A stretch of 64,000 bases of DNA from Utricularia gibba (lineage: Eukaryota; Plantae; Magnoliophyta). Below are positions 49,382 to 58,273 of the stretch, in pieces; position 1 is the first letter of the stretch, and each line of letters begins with the position of its first letter. The DNA is taken from the NCBI GenBank assembly GCA_002189035.1, contig NEEC01000004.1, positions 558,001 to 622,000 of the forward strand. The letters run 5' to 3'. Position numbers and translations under genes: made by a program. The notes beneath the pieces were generated by a model, which was given only the letters and a program-made list of their open reading frames with translations, did no database searches and was not told where the DNA came from.

Positions 49382-50992
49382 GGAATCACGATGAGATAAA
49401 AAAGGAGAGTTTCTTACATTTGATTCACCAACTCACACATTTAATGTGTGCCCTCCTCACAGGGTTCTACAAAAATTGCAAAACAAAAGTGTCCATTTCA
49501 GCTCTGCTCGCTTCTTCCTTTTCTAGTATTTTCAGAAACTCTTTAAATTTATCTCTCACGGCACTTTTGTCTTTTGAATGTGGGCAATGAAAAAGAAAGG
49601 CCATTCAAAAGAAAGACATTCTTATGCCACCATCCTTTGTACCGAAAAAGAGTCTGCAGTTGGAGTTGCTTTTCATTTTCCCTTTGCTTTTCTCTTTGCA
49701 GAACATGTTTTTTTTTACTGGATCCTAATCTCATATACCTTACCTTAATCATTCACAGTAACACATTACCATTTGGGTTCTCTTTACCCTCATTCCAAAA
49801 TCCTTTGGCCCCATCTTCCCTGCAAATCCAGATTCTTCATCCTTGTGGGTTCGCCTGCTTTCACCTCCAAATTCAAGATTCTTCATTTCTTTTGTGGGTA
49901 CCTTTCTTTTCACTCCTCCTTTATCCCCCTTCCACGTTTTCCCACTAACCGTAAAATGTGAAAAGGATAACATATCGACCATGCTTCTGAGTCCTTCAAA
50001 CCAGTTCCATCTGTCATATTGGTCTAGGTGAAAATTCAAGCAAGAAAACGATGGGGAGTAAATGTTTGAACTTTGCAGTAATCAGTAATCACTTTTTACC
50101 ATTTCAATTTGTGAATTATTCACATCCATATCACAATCATATCAAAGCCAAGCTGCAACTTACTACAGGTAATTTCTCCATGGCGCACTTCGCTCATGTG
50201 AGCTGTAAATGAATTGATGTACAGAGATGGGTGTTAAAGAGTCATCCGTGCCAATGTTACGTGGTAGATGGTAATGTCTCATTTAAATTGAGTATTTGAT
50301 AACAAAATTTTATTTTTCTAAAAAATAAAATGAATTATAAATCAATTTTAGATCATTTTAAACATGCAAATGCATTTTTTAGAGAACAAAAAATTGATTT
50401 TTTTTGTTTTTTTAATATCATAGATAATTTAAAATTATATTCAAAATAATTCTATATAATTAAATATATCTATTCAATATTATAAATTTAAATTCATAAA
50501 TTAACTCATATAATTTAAAAGTTAACACAAATTACTGATATTATATTTTATAAATTTATTATTCTCAAAAAATATAATTATACAAATATACTTATAAAAA
50601 CTAACATATATATCAATACACCTTCAATTTAATCATATAATATATAACTATTTAATGTACAAATAATCCAACATTAATTAAATTGTCTTGTCCAACTCTT
50701 CTAAAAAAATAATAAATTATTTACTTTAAAATAATAAGTCAACTGCCTAAATGGAGTGGAATTAAACGTACCTATTAACGGCGGATTAATATCAAGTATG
50801 TAGTACTTTGATGTAACTATTCAGGTAACTGGGCATAAAATGGGGTATAAGAATTGTACGTGGCCTAACGTCTATGTACGTAGCAATTAATTTTTGGTGC
50901 CCCGTAGGGTAAAATTGTCCATATCTAAGTTTATTTTTTATTTTTTAATTTATTCTTCGGCCAGCTAAGGTAATAGTGATGCTTTAATTTAA

Positions 50993-52012
50993 ATGACGGA
51001 GATAATATGGGAAACGGGCAATTCTCAACTGCCAACTCATTTTCTCCCGCCGCCGATGGGCTCAGTCGGATTCCACAAGTCGGCTAGCATATTCGTTGCC
51101 GGCCATCGGGGCCTGGTTGGATCCGCCGTTGTGAGGCGGCTGAACTCCCTTGGATACAATAACCTTATCCTCCGCTCCCATTCCGAGCTCGATCTCACGT
51201 CTCAATCTGCCGTTGACGCTTTCTTCGCCGCGGAGAAGCCACAGTTCGTCATCCTTGCCGCGGCGAAGGTAGGCGGGATTCACGCGAACAACACCTACCC
51301 GGCGGATTTCATCACGATTAACCTTCAAATCCAGACGAACGTCATTTCCGCGGCTTTTAGATTTGGAACCCTAAAGCTTATCTTTCTGGGTTCATCCTGC
51401 ATTTACCCCAAATTCGCTCCACAGCCCATACCCGAATCCGCTCTCTTGACCGGACTACTGGAACCCACCAATGAATGGTACGCTGTTGCTAAGATTTCAG
51501 GGATCAAGATGTGTCAAGCATTTCGGATTCAGCATTCTTTCGACGCGATTTCAGCCATGCCCACAAACTTGTACGGCCCCAATGACAACTTCCACCCTGA
51601 AAATTCCCACGTATTGCCTGCACTCCTTCGCCGGTTCCACGAAGCCAAGGTAAATAATACAGAGAGAGTTGTTGTCTGGGGAAGTGGGAAACCACTGCGC
51701 GAGTTCCTACATGTGGATGATCTTGCTGATGCTATCCTGTTCTTGCTTGAGAATTACTCTGGATTAGAGCATGTGAATGTAGGGAGTGGGAAAGAAGTCA
51801 CCATCAAGGAATTAGCTGAATTGGTGAAGGAAGTTGTTGGATATCCAGGGGAGATTGTGTGGGATTCCAGTAAGCCTGACGGAACCCCAAGGAAGCTGAT
51901 GGATAGTTCGAGGCTGGAGGAGTTGGGATGGAAGCCCAAGATTTCTCTCAAGGATGGACTCAAAGATACTTATCAATGGTATTTGGAAAATGTTGTTTAT
52001 TCAAAACATTGA
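50993..52012 (+). CDS. GER1: GDP-L-fucose synthase (GDP-4-keto-6-deoxymannose epimerase/reductase), intronless; true start may be 51056
   Basis: [77 protein letters not shown]. Confidence 0.95.
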
Positions 52013-52992
52013 CTTCCTTGATCGTACTCCATGAGGGACTGAAGAATGTTGTTTAAAGTGATGATCTTGTTGTTTTATCCCATATGCCTTGAGATGAGCA
52101 AGCTGCTGGTTTAGGCATGCCTTACAGTGAAACTTCACATTGTCTCTTGTCTTGCTCATGGCATGTATACTTACGAAGCAATGAATAAACAAACACTGCT
52201 CTGCTTTCATTTTAACTCTTGTCTGAGAAGAAATGCATATTAGCCTTCATTTGTGTTTGACATGTCCTATTAATCGTCATCATCATCATCATAACCCCAT
52301 TTCTTCAGTCCTGATTCTCCATAGCTGATAAAGAGCAGGTTTCCTTGGAAACAAAATGATCCACAGTTCCTGCTCATCGGCCCTGCACCCGCCGGCCTTG
52401 GAAGGATTGTAGTTTGCGGCATTGCAGTTCAACGTGAAGGAATGTGTCCGATCATTTAATTGCATTGAAGTTGACTGTATTTATTATCTTTATTGGATAA
52501 TGTCCGGCAGTTTCTATTTTGCAAACGACGAGCATAGGAGAACCTGAACACGTTGCCAAAAGAGGCTCGTCCCCATGTTTTCCGAAGGGGCTCTCTGATC
52601 ATTATTCAAGTTCGTTTAAGCAGTCTGATTGCTCACTGGAAACTGCGTTTGAAATTTGAATGAACGTGTTGCGCAAGTGACGAATGAGCCAGTTATTGCA
52701 AGAGGTAAGTATGATTTGAGCTTAATCTCAGTAATCATCTGTGTTTTGTCTGAATTCGGAAACCACAGTAATGAACTGCTCAAGATCGCAACGTTCAGTC
52801 TACAGCGGGTAGAAGAACGTGTAGTGATTTCAGTTAAAGACACCAAGCTGGAGCTAAGCACGATATGTTCGATGAACTTGGCAAAAGAAGTGAAGAATCA
52901 AAACTCACAGCAGCAGACAAATGTAATTTTCCAACGCTAGCGGTAGAGAAAAAATGATGCCAGAGAAACAAGAAATAAAACAGAAACAAGAA

Positions 52993-53017
52993 GATTGAGC
53001 CATCCCGCCAATATCAC
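52993..53017 (-). ncRNA. miR171-complementary site with a net 3-nt central insertion (candidate target-mimic element)
   Basis: Minus strand GTGATATTGGCG-GGAT-GGCTCAATC versus the perfect miR171 target GATATTGGCG-C-GGCTCAATCA. No complementary hairpin arm seen within about 100 nt. Confidence 0.6.
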
Positions 53018-54246
53018 CGTGACCACCGCAACCATCTCCACCGGCATCACATGCCGAGACGACGGAGTAATGGGCAAGAAGCGAAGCCCCATTTTGGAAA
53101 GCTGCGACCTTGGAACAAGATCAAAACACAACAAGGAGCCGCCACCGCCATTTCCTCTATTCTTAAGCAAACCTCCACCGGCACAGTCGCCTCCCCCACC
53201 GCCAGAAAAACAGAACCCAGAACCCCATTTCAAGAGATCAACTAAAAGAAAAAACATTTTCTTGCTTTCTTCCCATGTGAACCACAAAGCTCCACAACCT
53301 GCAGATCCCCCTTTTTTCTCAACTGGGTTTCATTTCCAAAAAAAAAAACAAAAACAATGAAATCTTTGTGTTTGGAAATCAAGGGATGTTCTGTTCGAAG
53401 ACGGGATGGAGCAAGAAAGAGTCGGAACAATGAATGCTACTGCTTTGCTTCCTCTTGTGTTCCTGCAAATACGTCTGCAGTTTGTCTGTCTCCTCTACTC
53501 TCGATGTAGCCACGAAAATTTTCCTCTTGCTTTTTCTCTGTTGTTACTTTTCATTTTTTCTAAATAAATAATGTTTTTGTTTTTTCATCAACCTTATCTC
53601 CCTTTTTCTAATAAGAGTATAATTAAATTCCCAAAACTAATTTAAAAATTATATTATGAAACTTTAATGAAGAATTAGAATATAAAATACAAGAAAACAG
53701 AGGAAGTCACACGCTTAGTGATTTATTAGGTAATTTGTATTAATTAATTAATAATTAACCATAATTGATGCTACAGCTAATTGCATGTGGACGGGATCGC
53801 TAGATTTGCGGGACCAGAGCAGCAGTTCTGAAACAGCGACGCTTCAGAAGGTTCCACTTTTGCCCTCAACAGCGTGGAAATCCCCGATATACCCTTCTGA
53901 CCCATTTCGAGGTGCTCGAGGACTGCCCACTGGGCTTCCTTAGACCGGGGTACGGTAGTGCTGAAGTAATTTTATGAACCGGCACGTGATCGATCCCCTT
54001 TGGATTGGGTTCAAAAATTATTTTTGGGAATATTTTATTTTGAGATAAATTAAAAATCCAAAATTTCGACAAAATTCTTAACCATGGCGGGTCGGGTTCA
54101 CGCCCGCTATCGCCTAAAATTAATAGAAAAATAATTATAAATATATAAAGGGAAATTCAGGCCCAATCTTCTCCGGCTTCATCCACAGCCACCGGTTCTC
54201 GGTGAAATTTTGAAAAATACGGACCAAGTGAGAGCATCGAGCTTCC

Positions 54247-55129
54247 ATGGCAGGATCGGCGATGGCGACGGCATGTTTTCCTATACGCTTAGGTGCGTGT
54301 GCCGCTCCTAGGGCATTTTCGAGCTCAACGGTTTCGTTCACATCTTTTCCTGTCGGAAAATCCCGTGCTCTCAACCTCAGCTTCTGCAAGTCTACATCTG
54401 AGCCGCTGCGTATCTGTTCTGGAAGAAACATTGCATCGTGGAACTTGGGAAACCCTCGCCCTCTGAGGGTGGAATGCGTCAAGGGGTATAAGATGAAGAC
54501 GCATAAGGCAATCATTTGTTCATTTGTTTTTTCACTATTTTTTTTGGGAGTGGATATTCGTGCGTTGAATTGGGATTAATTCAGGCGTCCGCCAAGCGAT
54601 TTAGGGTTTCTGGGGGTGGGAAGATTATGAGGAGAAGAGCGGGGAAGCAGCATTTGCTTAGAAAGAAGAATACAAAGAGGAGAAACAGGCTATCGAAAAT
54701 GGTACGACTTCTTGACATAAATTTGCTACACTTCTTTCTGAATATATTATGATCTAGTTGCTTTTTTGATTGAGGTTGGTAATGGGTAGTAGGAATACTT
54801 GTATTTTGTGGTCATCTAAGAGGATACACAATCTCTAGGAAGGAAAGGTTCTTCTTTAGTATGAATGCGCAGCAATGTTTCCTACGGTTTTGCTGTTGAT
54901 TGGTAGATTTCTTGTTCGTTGTCAATTTAAAGTTCATTGCTTTGACACCCACGATGGAAATACACATGTACCTTATCAAACCATCACGACAGAACTAGCG
55001 ACTCATGGTACCACGCCATATTTGTTTTCGAGTTCTCATGCCTCTGTTTTGCAGGTGCAAGTGGATCGCAGCGACTACAATAATGTGATTGGCGCCTTGC
55101 CCTACTTGAAGGTAAACAGGGACAATTGA
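54247..55129 (+). CDS. RPL35: Plastid 50S ribosomal protein L35 precursor
   Basis: Exons 54247-54507, 54585-54701 and 55055-55129 give a transit peptide plus GYKMKTHKASAKRFRVSGGGKIMRRRAGKQHLLRKKNTKRRNRLSKMVQVDRSDYNNVIGALPYLKV. Intron 1 is GC-AG. Confidence 0.95.
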
Positions 55130-55756
55130 TGAAGAATGTGGTGGTAGTGGTGCTGTTGTGCAGTTTCTGGCCAGACCACTAAAAAGATTTCAACTTTTTT
55201 TTTGCTACGTTCTCTGTGGTTTATCATCTTGCCTTATGAATTTGACGTAAGAGAACTTGTCATTGGCTTCTTCAACATCGAACAACATAACAAGTTGAGT
55301 TGTACCTGTTTCTTGATCAGATTTCATTAGAAATTCTTTGAAATGCACCAACAATACCCCACAGATTAAAGTAATCAATCCATCTAGAGTGCATGATCAT
55401 TAGTTCCTTCACAAGCCTATGCCTACAAACATATTCCCTGCCTTGGTTTTCATGGCGATACAGCAATGCAACGTTTTCAAGAGAAGCCAATCTTCTATCC
55501 TTGTGTGGTGATGTTTGCATCCACGCCCATGGTTCTCAGGACACTCATCAGAGATGCAATATTGCTGTGAAGTTTTGCGACAAAAGCCTGCCAAATAATA
55601 AGGTACTGTTTGACAAGGGAGATTCTTGAAGAGTGTTGGTAACTTGAACAGGTAGAAAATGACCCCAGAGGGACTCTGTTTCAAATATCGAAGCATGATT
55701 GTACCGGTATTTCTCTAGGTCCCCCACCCCAAAAGGCAACCCATATATCAGAGCAG

Positions 55757-58273
55757 CTAAACAAGAAATAATGATTCACTCAATATCTTACGATCTGTTG
55801 ATTGCATAAGGGATAAATGAAAGTTACGGGGAATCAGAGATGCGAGAGAAAGGAATACCTCATCATTCTCTTTTCTATGCCTTACTAATTCCGAAGGCCA
55901 GTTGTTCGCTAGCTTTTGAAGTTCAAGTTCAATATCTAGCATTCTTGAACTAGGGAGGGTCTGCATAGTTCATTAAATCAGAAGATGCAACTAATAATAA
56001 TAAATAAGATGAAGAAACACGTGTCTTTTGAGGCACATCAAGGCATCTGCGTGTACCTGAGTTAGCATTTGAATAACCACAGCCGCATTTTCAGGCTTAT
56101 TCTCAAGGAGAAAACCCTGGAAAGAAATCAAGATCAATATCTTGCAAAACATAAGAATCATCTAAGAGAATGACTTGAGATCAATATCCGGTGCAAATTC
56201 ACAGAGTGAATGGTCGAGAACATACGAACAACCTTAGCACAAGAAAAGCCAGTCGACAGGCTATGTCTCTTCATCACTTCAGATCTCCAATTCTCAATCT
56301 TCCACAAGGACTCAACATCTCCTACAGCAGAATGCAAAATACATAATTCGGCATTTCTTATGCCAATGTAGAGTGGAGAAAAATAGCACGCAGCATAAAC
56401 TCATCTAGAAACAGTACAAAACTGAACAAAATTTTAACACCTTTTCTCACGGAAAAATCCATCCAAATGTCGAAGGAAGTCTGTCTGAGCTTAACTCCGG
56501 ACTTGACAAATCTCTTTCCGTATTTTGACATCAGTCCCCATCTGTCTGAATTAGAACATATGCTGTCACATGAAAAACCCAGGAGGGAAGTTAATTGAGA
56601 GCAGATTAGGCTCTGTAAATAGGATATACATAAAACCCCAAGCATCTCCAATATTCTTATTACTTTTACATGATTTTGCTAACAATGCATTCTTCCTACA
56701 CTACACTATCCATTACTGCAAGCTATTTTCAACCACGCAAGACAGATCAAATCTAGGATACTAGAAGAAACAATTCCAAGACATAGAAAGATCACGTACA
56801 TAAATATGCAGAGACAGATGAATCAGAAAGAAAACATTTGCATTAACGTATACCTGAAGACTATATCCGCCGTTCCAGGTTGCACAGCTAAATCATTTTT
56901 CTTGACAAGTTTCATTACTTGAACTAAGAGATCTGAATCATTATTCTCTTTAGCATGTAACTGCATTACAAGAAGTCGTTTCTTCGCTGCTATCATTGAG
57001 CACTTTAACATTGCCAAAAAGAAAAAACCACGAACAATACCAGCAGATGATGTGCAGCTCCAATGTCAGGTGTCAGACCATATACATTATGCTTCCACAA
57101 AGTTTTCATGCCTAGTGACAAACAAATCAAGCTCCTTTAAAATTTTTAATTTTTCAAAGAATTAAAAAGATAAAGAAACATGTTCATTTAATAAATTGAC
57201 ACTGCTATTAATAGCAAATAAAATTTTCAAATGATTGGATATTTCTTCTAACACATGACAGACAATAATAAGTTGACCAAACTGAAGAAACTGCAAATTA
57301 AAATCTTAAGAATACGTCCACATGGATAAACCAGCAACTACTCCAGCTTACCAAAGTCAATGGCTCCAGCACGAACACAGGCTTTAGTAACTTCCCGGCA
57401 AAGTGCAGCGTTAAAGTCCTCAGATATCCGTAGATTGGATAGTCTCTGAAGCCCTCAATAGGCAACCAAAAGAGATTCGCCTTAAATGTGGATTAAATAA
57501 CTTTGGACCAATACATGTATAGCTCTACTCACAAATATCCGAAGCTTCTGCATTATGTCAAACAAAAGTTGAATATCTTCCTTCCTAGAACATTTAGCAA
57601 TTAAAGACCACAACAAAGCATTTGGAGGTGCAGTTCTTTTCTTCGAAATGGAATCGAGTATCTTATCGTAGACCCCTTGCACTGTTTCTACATCTGAAAA
57701 GAAATAATGTGCTCCTTATAAATCATAAAAACTCCAACTTATTATAAGGGACAAGACTAAAAAAAACCTGAAAAATCATTTTCTGCTGATGTAGAAAACG
57801 TCCTTCTAGAAATCATTGAAAGAGAGGCTGACTCTGTAGTGCCTCTTTGCACATAACTCTTCTTCCCTGCTAAAAAAAAAGTTTCTTGATACTGTTTTTC
57901 ACACCTGAGCAATGGTATATAAGGAGAATTTTCACGCTAGCTGCTCAATCACAACCATTATCTAACAGTCAATATTATCATTACCATTGGTGTCCTACAT
58001 ATACTAAATTAACTTTCATTACCAGGGAATCCAAAAACTAGAAACGGCATTGGCAAGTGTAACCGAATACTCACCAACATCCAGGTGCGATTCTAAAAGA
58101 GTGGGCTTGGGTTTCATCTGTCGAGCACTTATTCCATTCACCAATTCCTGTAACGGCGATTCACGACGATTTGAGATCTTAAAAAGACCATTTTGAAAAC
58201 CTCTACCACAAAATTGTTCATAATCAGCAAGGCAGCGAAGCTTCTTCAACGGGTTTCCAATTGCCCGCTTCAT
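55757..58273 (-). CDS. Mitochondrial degenerate PPR-like protein, homolog of Arabidopsis At3g21465/At4g15640 (legacy name 'adenylyl cyclase')
   Basis: Exon peptides PPNALLWSLIAKCSRKEDIQLLFDIMQKLR, LVKKNDLAVQPGTADIVF, DRWGLMSKYGKRFVKSGVKLRQTSFDIWMDF and ELQKLANNWPSEL match that family from memory. Not all exon boundaries resolved. Confidence 0.75.

Follow-up and report, generated by a model that had tools for sequence, protein, structure and literature searches.

An interrupted miR171 sequence between GER1 and rpl35

Between GER1 and rpl35 of Utricularia gibba the plus strand carries the sequence of miR171 with extra bases at its centre, which raises the question of whether the opposite strand gives rise to a decoy, or endogenous target mimic (eTM), of this microRNA. 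In the 64-kb stretch of DNA that was analysed (the window), positions 52993-53017 of the plus strand read GATTGAGCC ATCC CGCCAATATC AC, as the initial annotation had described, and the interrupted miR171 sense sequence itself covers 52993-53015. Since the miR171 sense sequence on the plus strand is interrupted by extra central bases, a minus-strand RNA would contain a miR171 site with a bulge. This putative target-mimic site forms a 26-nt miR171-complementary island on the minus strand, from 52992 to 53017, with the sequence GU GAUAUUGGC GGGAU GGCUCAAUC U, and its bulge region, derived from RNAduplex structures, lies at 53003-53006. The window has a single copy of the gapped miR171 pattern and none of 100 shuffles has any; the chance expectation, by our own estimate, is about 4e-6 per window and about 0.03 per 500-Mb genome. 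No ungapped miR171-like 21-mer with three or fewer mismatches was found in the 64-kb window.

GER1 (GDP-L-fucose synthase; 50993-52012, plus strand), whose product is 82-89% identical to asterid and rosid GER proteins, is convergent with the site, lies outside the RNA described below and served as the synteny anchor. The GER1-rpl35 interval, initially given as 1 kb, measures about 2.2 kb.

A discrete RNA unit carries the site

Assembled RNA contigs from four runs in three studies define an unspliced transcription unit at 52792-53505, assigned to the minus strand, whose ends are minimum estimates. The contigs extend over 52792-53505 in X1 (717 nt), 52924-53317 and 53323-53486 in X2, 52857-53226 in X4 and 53079-53303 in X7, and those spanning the site are colinear with the genome and have no joints. 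As the contigs of X1, X2 and X4 cross the site without any indel, the extra bases are retained in RNA and are not an assembly error. The depth was zero in all runs at 52229-52771 and 53677-54038, and the GER1 RNA contigs terminate at 52194-52215; the empty flanks indicate that the unit is neither DNA carry-over nor an untranslated region of GER1 or rpl35. The assembler depth of the unit, which according to the tool is a poor measure of expression, was about 0.02-0.44 times that of GER1.

Concerning the strand, the template-switch oligo was found 5′ of plus-strand genes at 51808, 54175 and 55111, and in reverse complement to the right of 53226, indicating a minus-strand RNA in agreement with the transcript that had been predicted over the site. 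What carries the site is an expressed non-coding RNA of the miR171-complementary strand; the evidence for this strand is thin, as it comes from one template-switch junction of one run, the remaining contigs being directionless.

Predicted pairing with miR171 isoforms

Duplexes were predicted with miR171a, miR170-type and miR171b/c sequences, from which the isoforms of U. gibba itself may differ. RNAduplex placed the bulge at miRNA positions 11/12 for miR171a, 12/13 for the miR170 type and 9/10 for miR171b/c, and the predicted energy of miR171 binding at the site was -30 to -32 kcal/mol, about 80% of that of a perfect site. With the GUG-type miR171 the unpaired target bases are GGG (plus-strand positions 53004-53006), and in register 0 positions 2-12 of this isoform are fully paired, with the bulge at 12/13, outside the classic 10/11; in the miR171a alternative the unpaired bases are GGA (53003-53005). 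The target U opposite plus-strand position 53002, adjoining the bulge, forms a G:U wobble with the miRNA in U. gibba.

By the eTM rules of Wu et al. (2013), cited from PMC5148581, positions 2-8 must pair perfectly, a bulge of 3 nt must fall between positions 9 and 12, and at most three mismatches may occur elsewhere. Positions 2-10 are Watson-Crick paired for both miR171a and the miR170 type, and so the 2-8 segment is perfect with either; for the isoform in the +3 register (miR171b/c), position 8 is a G:U wobble in U. gibba and a G-C pair in five other genomes. Three unpaired target nucleotides fall between positions 9 and 12 with miR171a and with miR171b/c, while the minimum-energy pairing of the miR170 type puts the bulge beyond this span. 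Outside the bulge, the deviations are a U:U at miRNA position 1 and the G:U adjoining the bulge, within the limit of three mismatches or G:U pairs. The predicted miR171a duplex agrees with all of the quoted pairing rules.

The bulged site is conserved across core eudicots

The initial annotation had proposed that the site would be kept in syntenic intervals while its flanks diverge, and comparative alignments bore this out. Downstream of their GER orthologue, and with side and strand unchanged, a bulged site is also present in the genomes of Striga (L002, 12809-12831), Salvia miltiorrhiza (L003, 11115-11137), Fraxinus (L005, 17087-17109), Coffea (L008, 16701-16723) and Ipomoea (L012, 18561-18584). 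Across the six genomes, which represent three lamiid orders, 24 of the 26 island positions are invariant, and the flanks are near background and unalignable. Matches were accepted with at most one mismatch over both arms combined, because two mismatches per arm gave about 1.5 chance matches per shuffle of all loci. Within 8-10 kb, the site was absent from 7 of the 12 GER loci fetched (Handroanthus, Primulina, Nicotiana, Salvia hispanica, Salvia divinorum, Forsythia with two copies, and Actinidia), and these loci may be GER paralogues, may have their site farther away or may have lost it.

A metagenome scan recovered the same arms in 35 contigs forming 15 clusters, against about 0.2 expected by our own estimate; among these clusters were some with the centres GGAAA, GGGAC and TGAAC. 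In two clusters a GER gene lies in convergent orientation at a distance of 5.5-7.3 kb; as its identity to Salix GER is 97% in one and 93% in the other, these clusters are poplar paralogues. A further cluster derives from a phaseoloid legume, and no GER gene was seen on the contigs of the legume copies.

The consensus of the 21 loci is GUGAUAUUGGC-NNN-A-Y-GGCUCAAUCU: the pairing arms are fixed, the A after the bulge is invariant, and the bulge itself reads GGG, UGG, UAG, UAC, AAG, UGA, GGA or GGGG, with a constant length of 3 nt save in Ipomoea (4 nt). Fixed arms, drifting bulge letters at a maintained length and unalignable flanks are exactly what is predicted for a target mimic. As judged from these alignments, the pairing arms and the bulge length have been under purifying selection across core eudicots. 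The comparative data also favour the alignment with the GUG-type isoform, in which the target reads GGC-[GGG]-A-U-GGC; within lamiids the alignment with the GCG-type miR171a (bulge GGA), on which the initial annotation was based, stands on an equal footing.

That the element has stayed tightly linked to GER for more than 100 million years could also be expected if the conserved 26-mer worked as DNA, such as an enhancer or insulator in the vicinity of GER, or bound another factor, the match to miR171 being functionally irrelevant. We consider this very unlikely, since both arms match miR171 exactly (9+9 to 10+10 nt), the conserved block spans both known miR171 registers (the 5′ GU of the site included), its central letters are free to vary, unlike those of a protein-binding DNA motif, the region is transcribed, and the legume copies come without GER on their contigs. 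Even less credit can be given to the view that a MIR171 gene or a piece of a HAM/SCL6 GRAS gene left this element as a relic with no function. The translation of the site, VILAG(R/W)LNL, does correspond to ILARLN, which we take to be the GRAS target peptide, plus one extra codon, and for this reason the element may have originated from a HAM fragment; a relic, however, would hardly keep 24 of its 26 positions in Lamiales, Gentianales and Solanales amid decaying flanks, nor both arms in poplar and legumes, and neither GRAS similarity nor a hairpin was found.

Coding potential and hairpin analysis

An ATG-initiated ORF of 106 codons (52940-53257, minus strand) runs through the site and ends in a hydrophobic stretch, and the initial annotation had considered that it might be translated. 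This would make the locus a gene for a small tail-anchored membrane protein whose mRNA is regulated via the miR171 site, which we regard as highly improbable. The ORF is lineage-specific, being open only in U. gibba: the stop-to-stop frame across the site is shut within 26-56 codons in the other five genomes, the 4-nt bulge of Ipomoea is a frameshift through it, and in rosids the bulge UAG together with the UGA of GUGAUA brings stops into two of the three frames. No homologue of the 106-aa product was found among 5.8 billion proteins, no Pfam family matched either of the two long ORFs at E≤10, and the start is not conserved. Two AUGs precede the ORF, opening short frames of 4 codons (ATG 53333) and 12 codons (ATG 53277). 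The 106-codon ORF is probably not a gene.

The same searches bear on two other candidates. A HAM/SCL6/NSP2 GRAS target gene was rejected on the missing Pfam family, the lack of homologues and the non-conservation of the ORF, and the flanks are not those of a decayed GRAS gene. A MIR171 precursor was likewise rejected: the mature sequence is interrupted, the Rfam search returned no MIR171 family, whether in the whole window at the gathering threshold or in the region at E≤10, where it gave only noise, and no complementary arm was detected, as already remarked in the initial annotation, since in six species the strongest pairing of the motif with the 250 nt on either side stayed at the shuffled background on both strands.

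A second short block is found about 75 nt upstream of the site, at 53084-53113 on the minus strand (..CAAAATC..TTT..AA.TGGGGCTT). It is kept only among four Lamiales sequences and is indistinct in the alignments of Coffea and Ipomoea; its inner ATG is replaced by GTG or GTT in Striga and Fraxinus, and it therefore does not represent a conserved start codon.

A putative decoy of miR171

Taken together, the data support the miR171-decoy reading of the initial annotation, and we assign a probability of roughly 75% to the minus-strand RNA between GER1 and rpl35 being an endogenous target mimic of miR171. It would belong to a known type of natural decoy and is very probably a real one. In the proposed mechanism, minus-strand transcription between the two genes would yield a non-coding RNA that is unspliced and at least about 0.7 kb long; its sole strongly constrained element is the 26-nt site, predicted to pair with miR171 on either side of an unpaired 3-nt bulge. 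The bulge is predicted at or beside the slicing position (9/10, 11/12 or 12/13, depending on the isoform), so that AGO1-miR171 would be bound tightly yet be unable to slice; miR171 would be titrated or destabilised and the GRAS targets of the HAM/SCL6 type would be relieved. That the RNA stays uncleaved, sequesters miR171 and has a physiological effect is what we infer from the parallels that IPS1-miR399 and engineered bulge decoys of miR171 provide.

The pairing itself could instead be read as that of a true miR171 target, a lncRNA that is cleaved or repressed and has another function under miR171 control, with the bulge tuning the efficiency. The scissile 10/11 position is predicted to be paired both with the GUG-type isoform, contiguous through positions 2-12 in register 0, and with miR171a, whose bulge falls at 11/12, and the second conserved block in Lamiales hints at a further function. 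A bulge length kept at 3-4 nt in 21 of 21 loci despite the drift of its letters is, however, hard to explain unless the bulge is selected, and nothing besides the site is conserved between orders. Genuine HAM targets have no bulge. We consider a true target unlikely.

Returning to the decoy, the comparative data would allow a broader proposal, which is possible but which we hold at somewhat less than even odds. The RNA may belong to an ancient family of syntenic lncRNAs, eTM171, predating the rosid-asterid split and convergent with GER in lamiids and poplar, whose only constraint would be the 26-nt bulged site fitting both miR171 registers; it would then be a second deeply conserved decoy of the IPS1-like kind, at the core of the miR171-HAM module, not yet described as such.

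The miR171-HAM module controls meristem maintenance, branching, chlorophyll synthesis, somatic embryogenesis and root symbioses, and a conserved brake on miR171 would bear on all of them. Its 26 nt would also make the site a small and precisely defined target for editing the genomes of many crops and model plants. The maintenance of the arms and the bulge length for more than 100 million years in a fixed neighbourhood is strong evolutionary evidence of selection on a decoy. The physiological weight of natural target mimics is debated, as most are single-species predictions tested by over-expression (PMC5599236).

Comparison with known target mimics

Decoys of this type are not new, as rice (MIKKI), lily and poplar are known to have miR171 mimics; what may not have been reported before is how deeply the site is conserved and that it is linked to GER. 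In a full-text literature search no paper contained the versions of the site sequence, and the term eTM171 retrieved only lily and apple papers.

The closest parallel in mode is with IPS1/At4, the target mimics of miR399 (Franco-Zorrilla et al., 2007, as summarised in PMC3121747 and PMC5599236). Like these, the present RNA is short and non-coding, conserves only a miRNA motif of about 23-26 nt with a 3-nt bulge amid divergent flanks, and spans several orders; it differs in addressing miR171 instead of miR399, in having no sequence homology to them, in having no known link to phosphate starvation and in the predicted position of its bulge, which is 9/10, 11/12 or 12/13 and not 10/11. Membership in the IPS1/At4 family was rejected, since the 23-nt miR399 motif is absent, and the likeness is one of mode.

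MIKKI, a retrotransposon-derived sponge of rice, lowers miR171 and protects SCL/HAM mRNAs (PMC5599236). Like MIKKI, the present RNA would be a natural miR171-binding RNA that escapes cleavage. The MIKKI site arose by splicing of an LTR retrotransposon, has mismatches at positions 11 and 14 and no bulge, and is confined to Oryza (PMC5599236), whereas the present RNA is unspliced, bulged and conserved across core eudicots. A sponge of the MIKKI type was therefore rejected, the RNA contigs being colinear and jointless and the site bulged.

For Lilium, the text of PMC9171120 describes lpu-eTM171a/b as miR171 mimics predicted from the transcriptome, and for Populus x canescens, that of PMC9135444 describes the lncRNAs MSTRG.13550.1, MSTRG.6097.1 and MSTRG.27072.1 likewise; over-expression or transient assays support them as decoys. 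As presented in these texts, both sets are single-species candidates, with no cross-order conservation or GER linkage reported there. The poplar lncRNAs may correspond to the two GER-linked poplar copies found here.

The present site also resembles the artificial decoys MIM171 (Todesco et al., 2010, as cited in PMC8910752) and miR171_3B, with which it shares a miR171 complement carrying three extra central nucleotides; these constructs differ in being driven by the 35S promoter and in having the insertion exactly between positions 10 and 11. The phenotypes described for them concern leaves, chlorophyll and flowers, and in Arabidopsis the engineered 3-nt bulge of miR171_3B depletes miR171 and raises SCL6-III (PMC3121747).

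An interrupted miR171 sequence lies between GER1 and rpl35

The plus strand reads GATTGAGCC ATCC CGCCAATATC AC at 52993-53017, and direct reading thus confirmed the interrupted miR171 sequence on which the initial annotation was built. In a pattern search for the two miR171 arms separated by 0-8 nt, this was the single match in the window, and none was obtained in 100 dinucleotide shuffles. By our own arithmetic (19 fixed bases, nine gap lengths), chance would provide about 4e-6 matches per 64-kb window and about 0.03 per 500-Mb genome, so the gapped match is not attributable to chance. No ungapped miR171-like 21-mer with three or fewer mismatches was found anywhere in the 64-kb window. The isoform strings used, UGAUUGAGCCGCGCCAAUAUC and UUGAGCCGUGCCAAUAUCACG, are both found verbatim in the published literature.

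The motif could instead belong to a MIR171 hairpin, which the initial annotation had already discounted. Rfam returned no family for the whole window at gathering thresholds, and noise alone at E ≤ 10 for the region 52000-54200. Moreover, no complementary partner for the motif is present within ±250 nt on either strand, the duplex energies of -7 to -23 kcal/mol being those of shuffled flanks; a MIR171 hairpin is therefore ruled out.

The site is carried by a discrete, probably minus-strand RNA

Assembled RNA contigs from four runs of three studies were mapped over 50600-56000. On the plus strand, the site is flanked by the GER1 gene for GDP-L-fucose synthase (ORF at 50993-52012, assigned by protein similarity), whose nearest relatives are from Lamiales (Handroanthus 89%, Striga 87%, Salvia 86%), and by the gene for the plastid ribosomal protein L35 (rpl35), starting near 54247. 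The GER1 ORF opens 21 codons upstream of the start of its homologues (query coverage 90-93%) and its RNA contigs start at 51026 and 51055, so the second ATG, at about 51056, is probably the true start codon. In rpl35, the contigs show a GT..AG exon joint from 54700 to 55054. Right after the plus-strand rpl35 exons, a CT..AC joint at 55586-55858, that is a minus-strand intron, suggests a convergent minus-strand gene overlapping the rpl35 3′ end.

The GER1 contigs stop at 52194-52215 and those of rpl35 begin at 54175-54257, with zero depth in all four runs at 52229-52771 and 53677-54038. Between these two silent gaps lies a separate, colinear unit without joints, represented by one contig of 717 nt in run X1 (52792-53505), two in X2 (52924-53317 and 53323-53486) and one each in X4 (52857-53226) and X7 (53079-53303). 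The silent flanks exclude both DNA carry-over as the source of these contigs and the identity of the unit as a UTR of GER1 or rpl35. Since the X1, X2 and X4 contigs cross the site without any insertion or deletion, the extra central bases are real and retained in the RNA. The assembler depth relative to GER1 ranged from about 0.02 (X7) to 0.44 (X1), which suggests variable expression of the unit, depth being a poor measure of expression.

The strand was read from the libraries of one study (P1), prepared with a template-switch oligo with ...GATATACGGG at its end. This oligo was found, in run X4, 5′ of plus-strand genes at 51808, 54175 and 55111, and its reverse complement behind 53226, next to a genomic CCCC (GGGG on a minus-sense RNA). 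Either origin of this junction, a genuine 5′ end or strand invasion, assigns the RNA to the minus strand; the minus orientation anticipated in the initial annotation is thus probable, from a single junction in one run. In Striga asiatica, the public annotation holds a minus-strand gene of 155 residues without Pfam match (locus L002, 12833-16954), whose coding end (TAG) adjoins the miR171 site, which would start its 3′ UTR; this lends weak independent support to minus-strand transcription in Striga.

The RNA is best read as non-coding

The suggestion that the transcript also encodes a protein of about 106 residues did not hold. For the ORF of 106 codons from ATG (52940-53257, minus strand), a search of 5.8 billion proteins gave no homologue and Pfam gave nothing at E ≤ 10. 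Two upstream AUGs, opening 4 codons at 53333 and 12 codons at 53277, come before this ORF. In five of five other genomes the stop-to-stop frame over the site spans 26-56 codons, mostly without a start codon. One frame encodes VILAG(R/W)LNL in all species, which corresponds to ILARLN, the GRAS peptide at the miR171 site of HAM genes, plus one additional codon. An origin of the site from a HAM fragment is compatible with this likeness, which already follows from nucleotide conservation.

The bulged site is conserved beside GER genes

The DNA around GER orthologues of other plants was scanned for the bulged site, tolerating up to two mismatches per arm. Bulged sites were found at five genome loci, downstream of GER and in the strand orientation of the window, in species covering Lamiales, Gentianales and Solanales: Striga asiatica (L002, 12809-12831; 3.9 kb from the GER stop), Salvia miltiorrhiza (L003, 11115-11137; 2.2 kb), Fraxinus pennsylvanica (L005, 17087-17109; 7.7 kb), Coffea arabica (L008, 16701-16723; 5.8 kb) and Ipomoea nil (L012, 18561-18584; 7.6 kb). 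When the whole GER1-rpl35 interval was compared by BLASTN with L001-L007, the matches were limited to a stretch of 39-74 nt at the site. The 26-nt island has 24 invariant positions in the alignment of all six sequences, against a mean column identity of 51% and with essentially unalignable flanks, so the site has been kept at syntenic GER loci while its surroundings diverged. The island shows three changes, all in or beside the bulge: a C to U transition in the window (G:U wobble), a G to U in Fraxinus and an extra G in Ipomoea. The Ipomoea nil bulge has 4 nt (GGGA or GGGG) vs 3 nt in the others, the bulge being retained and the frame not.

No bulged site was detected within 8-10 kb at seven other GER loci (Handroanthus, Primulina, Nicotiana, Salvia hispanica, Salvia divinorum, two Forsythia copies, Actinidia), which may be GER paralogues, carry the site farther away or have lost it. 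A second short block, ..CAAAATC..TTT..AA.TGGGGCTT, precedes the miR171 site by about 75 nt on the minus strand (53084-53113). Striga, Salvia and Fraxinus have this block in common with the window, whereas it is not clearly seen in Coffea and Ipomoea; it contains an ATG that is not conserved, and could be another binding site.

Beyond asterids, one exact-pattern scan of JGI metagenome contigs (GTGATATTGGC-N4-7-GGCTCAATCT) retrieved 35 contigs vs about 0.2 expected by our own estimate, in 15 sequence clusters, all with a centre of 5 nt. In two clusters a convergent GER gene lies 5.5 and 7.3 kb away from the site, with 97% and 93% identity to the GER of Salix udensis; judged by sequence, these are poplar-type Salicaceae host DNA with two paralogous GER-site pairs, which would place the GER linkage before the rosid-asterid split. 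Another cluster adjoins a gene with best matches to Vigna and Phaseolus proteins (78-84%), pointing to a phaseoloid legume as its host. The legume-type clusters (within L015-L048) form at least three paralogue groups with common downstream letters GTTAGC(TTAGTG), their bulged sites being present in several related hosts; these contigs carry no GER gene.

Arms are conserved and bulge letters are free

The 21 distinct loci give the consensus GU GAUAUUGGC NNN A Y GGCUCAAUC U. The search pattern itself imposed the arms and both outer elements (GU and U) on the metagenome matches. The outer letters are independent observations in the six genome loci, and the arm sequence in five of them, the window being the starting observation; of the two mismatches per arm tolerated in the genome scan, a single one was seen in total. 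The centre was unconstrained in every search. The centre has 5 letters in all loci except Ipomoea (6), the fourth is always A, and the first three vary (GGG, UGG, UAG, UAC, AAG, UGA, GGA). For a target mimic one expects, at the level of sequence, that the pairing letters are conserved, that those of the bulge vary freely and that the bulge keeps its length; neither a coding sequence nor a DNA-binding motif nor a decaying relic predicts this pattern.

By RNAduplex, the site is predicted to pair with miR171 isoforms at -30.5 to -32.5 kcal/mol vs -37.5 to -39.0 for perfect sites. With miR171a, 10 pairs, a 3-nt target bulge at miRNA positions 11/12 and 10 pairs are formed; the miR170 type gives 9 pairs, a bulge at 12/13 and 11 pairs, and miR171b/c 11 pairs, a bulge at 9/10 and 9 pairs. 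With miR171a, the site conforms to the published target-mimic rules as quoted in PMC5148581 (positions 2-8 perfect, 3-nt bulge within 9-12, at most three other mismatches). The consensus is the exact complement of GUG-type miR171 (...GCCGUGCC...) plus three extra unpaired nt; the lamiid bulge GGG also permits perfect pairing to GCG-type miR171a, GGA then being bulged. The conserved block covers the union of both miR171 registers (UGAUUGAG...AUAUC and UUGAG...AUAUCAC).

A putative miR171 decoy compared with known mimics

We consider it probable (about 0.75) that this is a genuine, selected miR171 decoy RNA. The IPS1-like decoy initially proposed is supported, apart from the 106-residue protein; what is shown is a bulged miR171 site that is conserved, transcribed and non-coding. 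By analogy with the published engineered, rice, lily and poplar miR171 decoys, AGO1-miR171 would bind the site without slicing, free miR171 would thereby be lowered, and HAM/SCL6-type GRAS mRNAs would be protected. The mechanism is known, and for a natural mimic the support from evolution is unusually strong; the conserved site also defines a clean 26-nt target for genetic tests. No description of the conservation depth and fixed GER linkage was found in the literature, in a comparison made without the Wu et al. (2013) survey and PeTMbase-type databases; poplar members may already be listed as anonymous lncRNAs.

miR171 mimics are an already known kind. Arabidopsis plants with an engineered decoy, in which 3 nt are inserted at 10/11, have strongly depleted miR171 and raised SCL6-III (PMC3121747), MIKKI has a like miR171-depleting and SCL-raising effect in rice roots (PMC5599236), lpu-eTM171a/b act similarly in lily (PMC9171120) and a lncRNA from poplar counteracts miR171 when assayed transiently (PMC9135444). 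Whereas the engineered insertion is at 10/11, the bulge described here falls at 11/12 (miR171a) or 12/13 (miR170 type), where the block of slicing may be less full. Unlike MIKKI, the RNA is unspliced and bulged, with no splice junction making the site, and thus differs in origin. It would resemble IPS1/At4 in its working, but lies outside that family, its miRNA being a different one.
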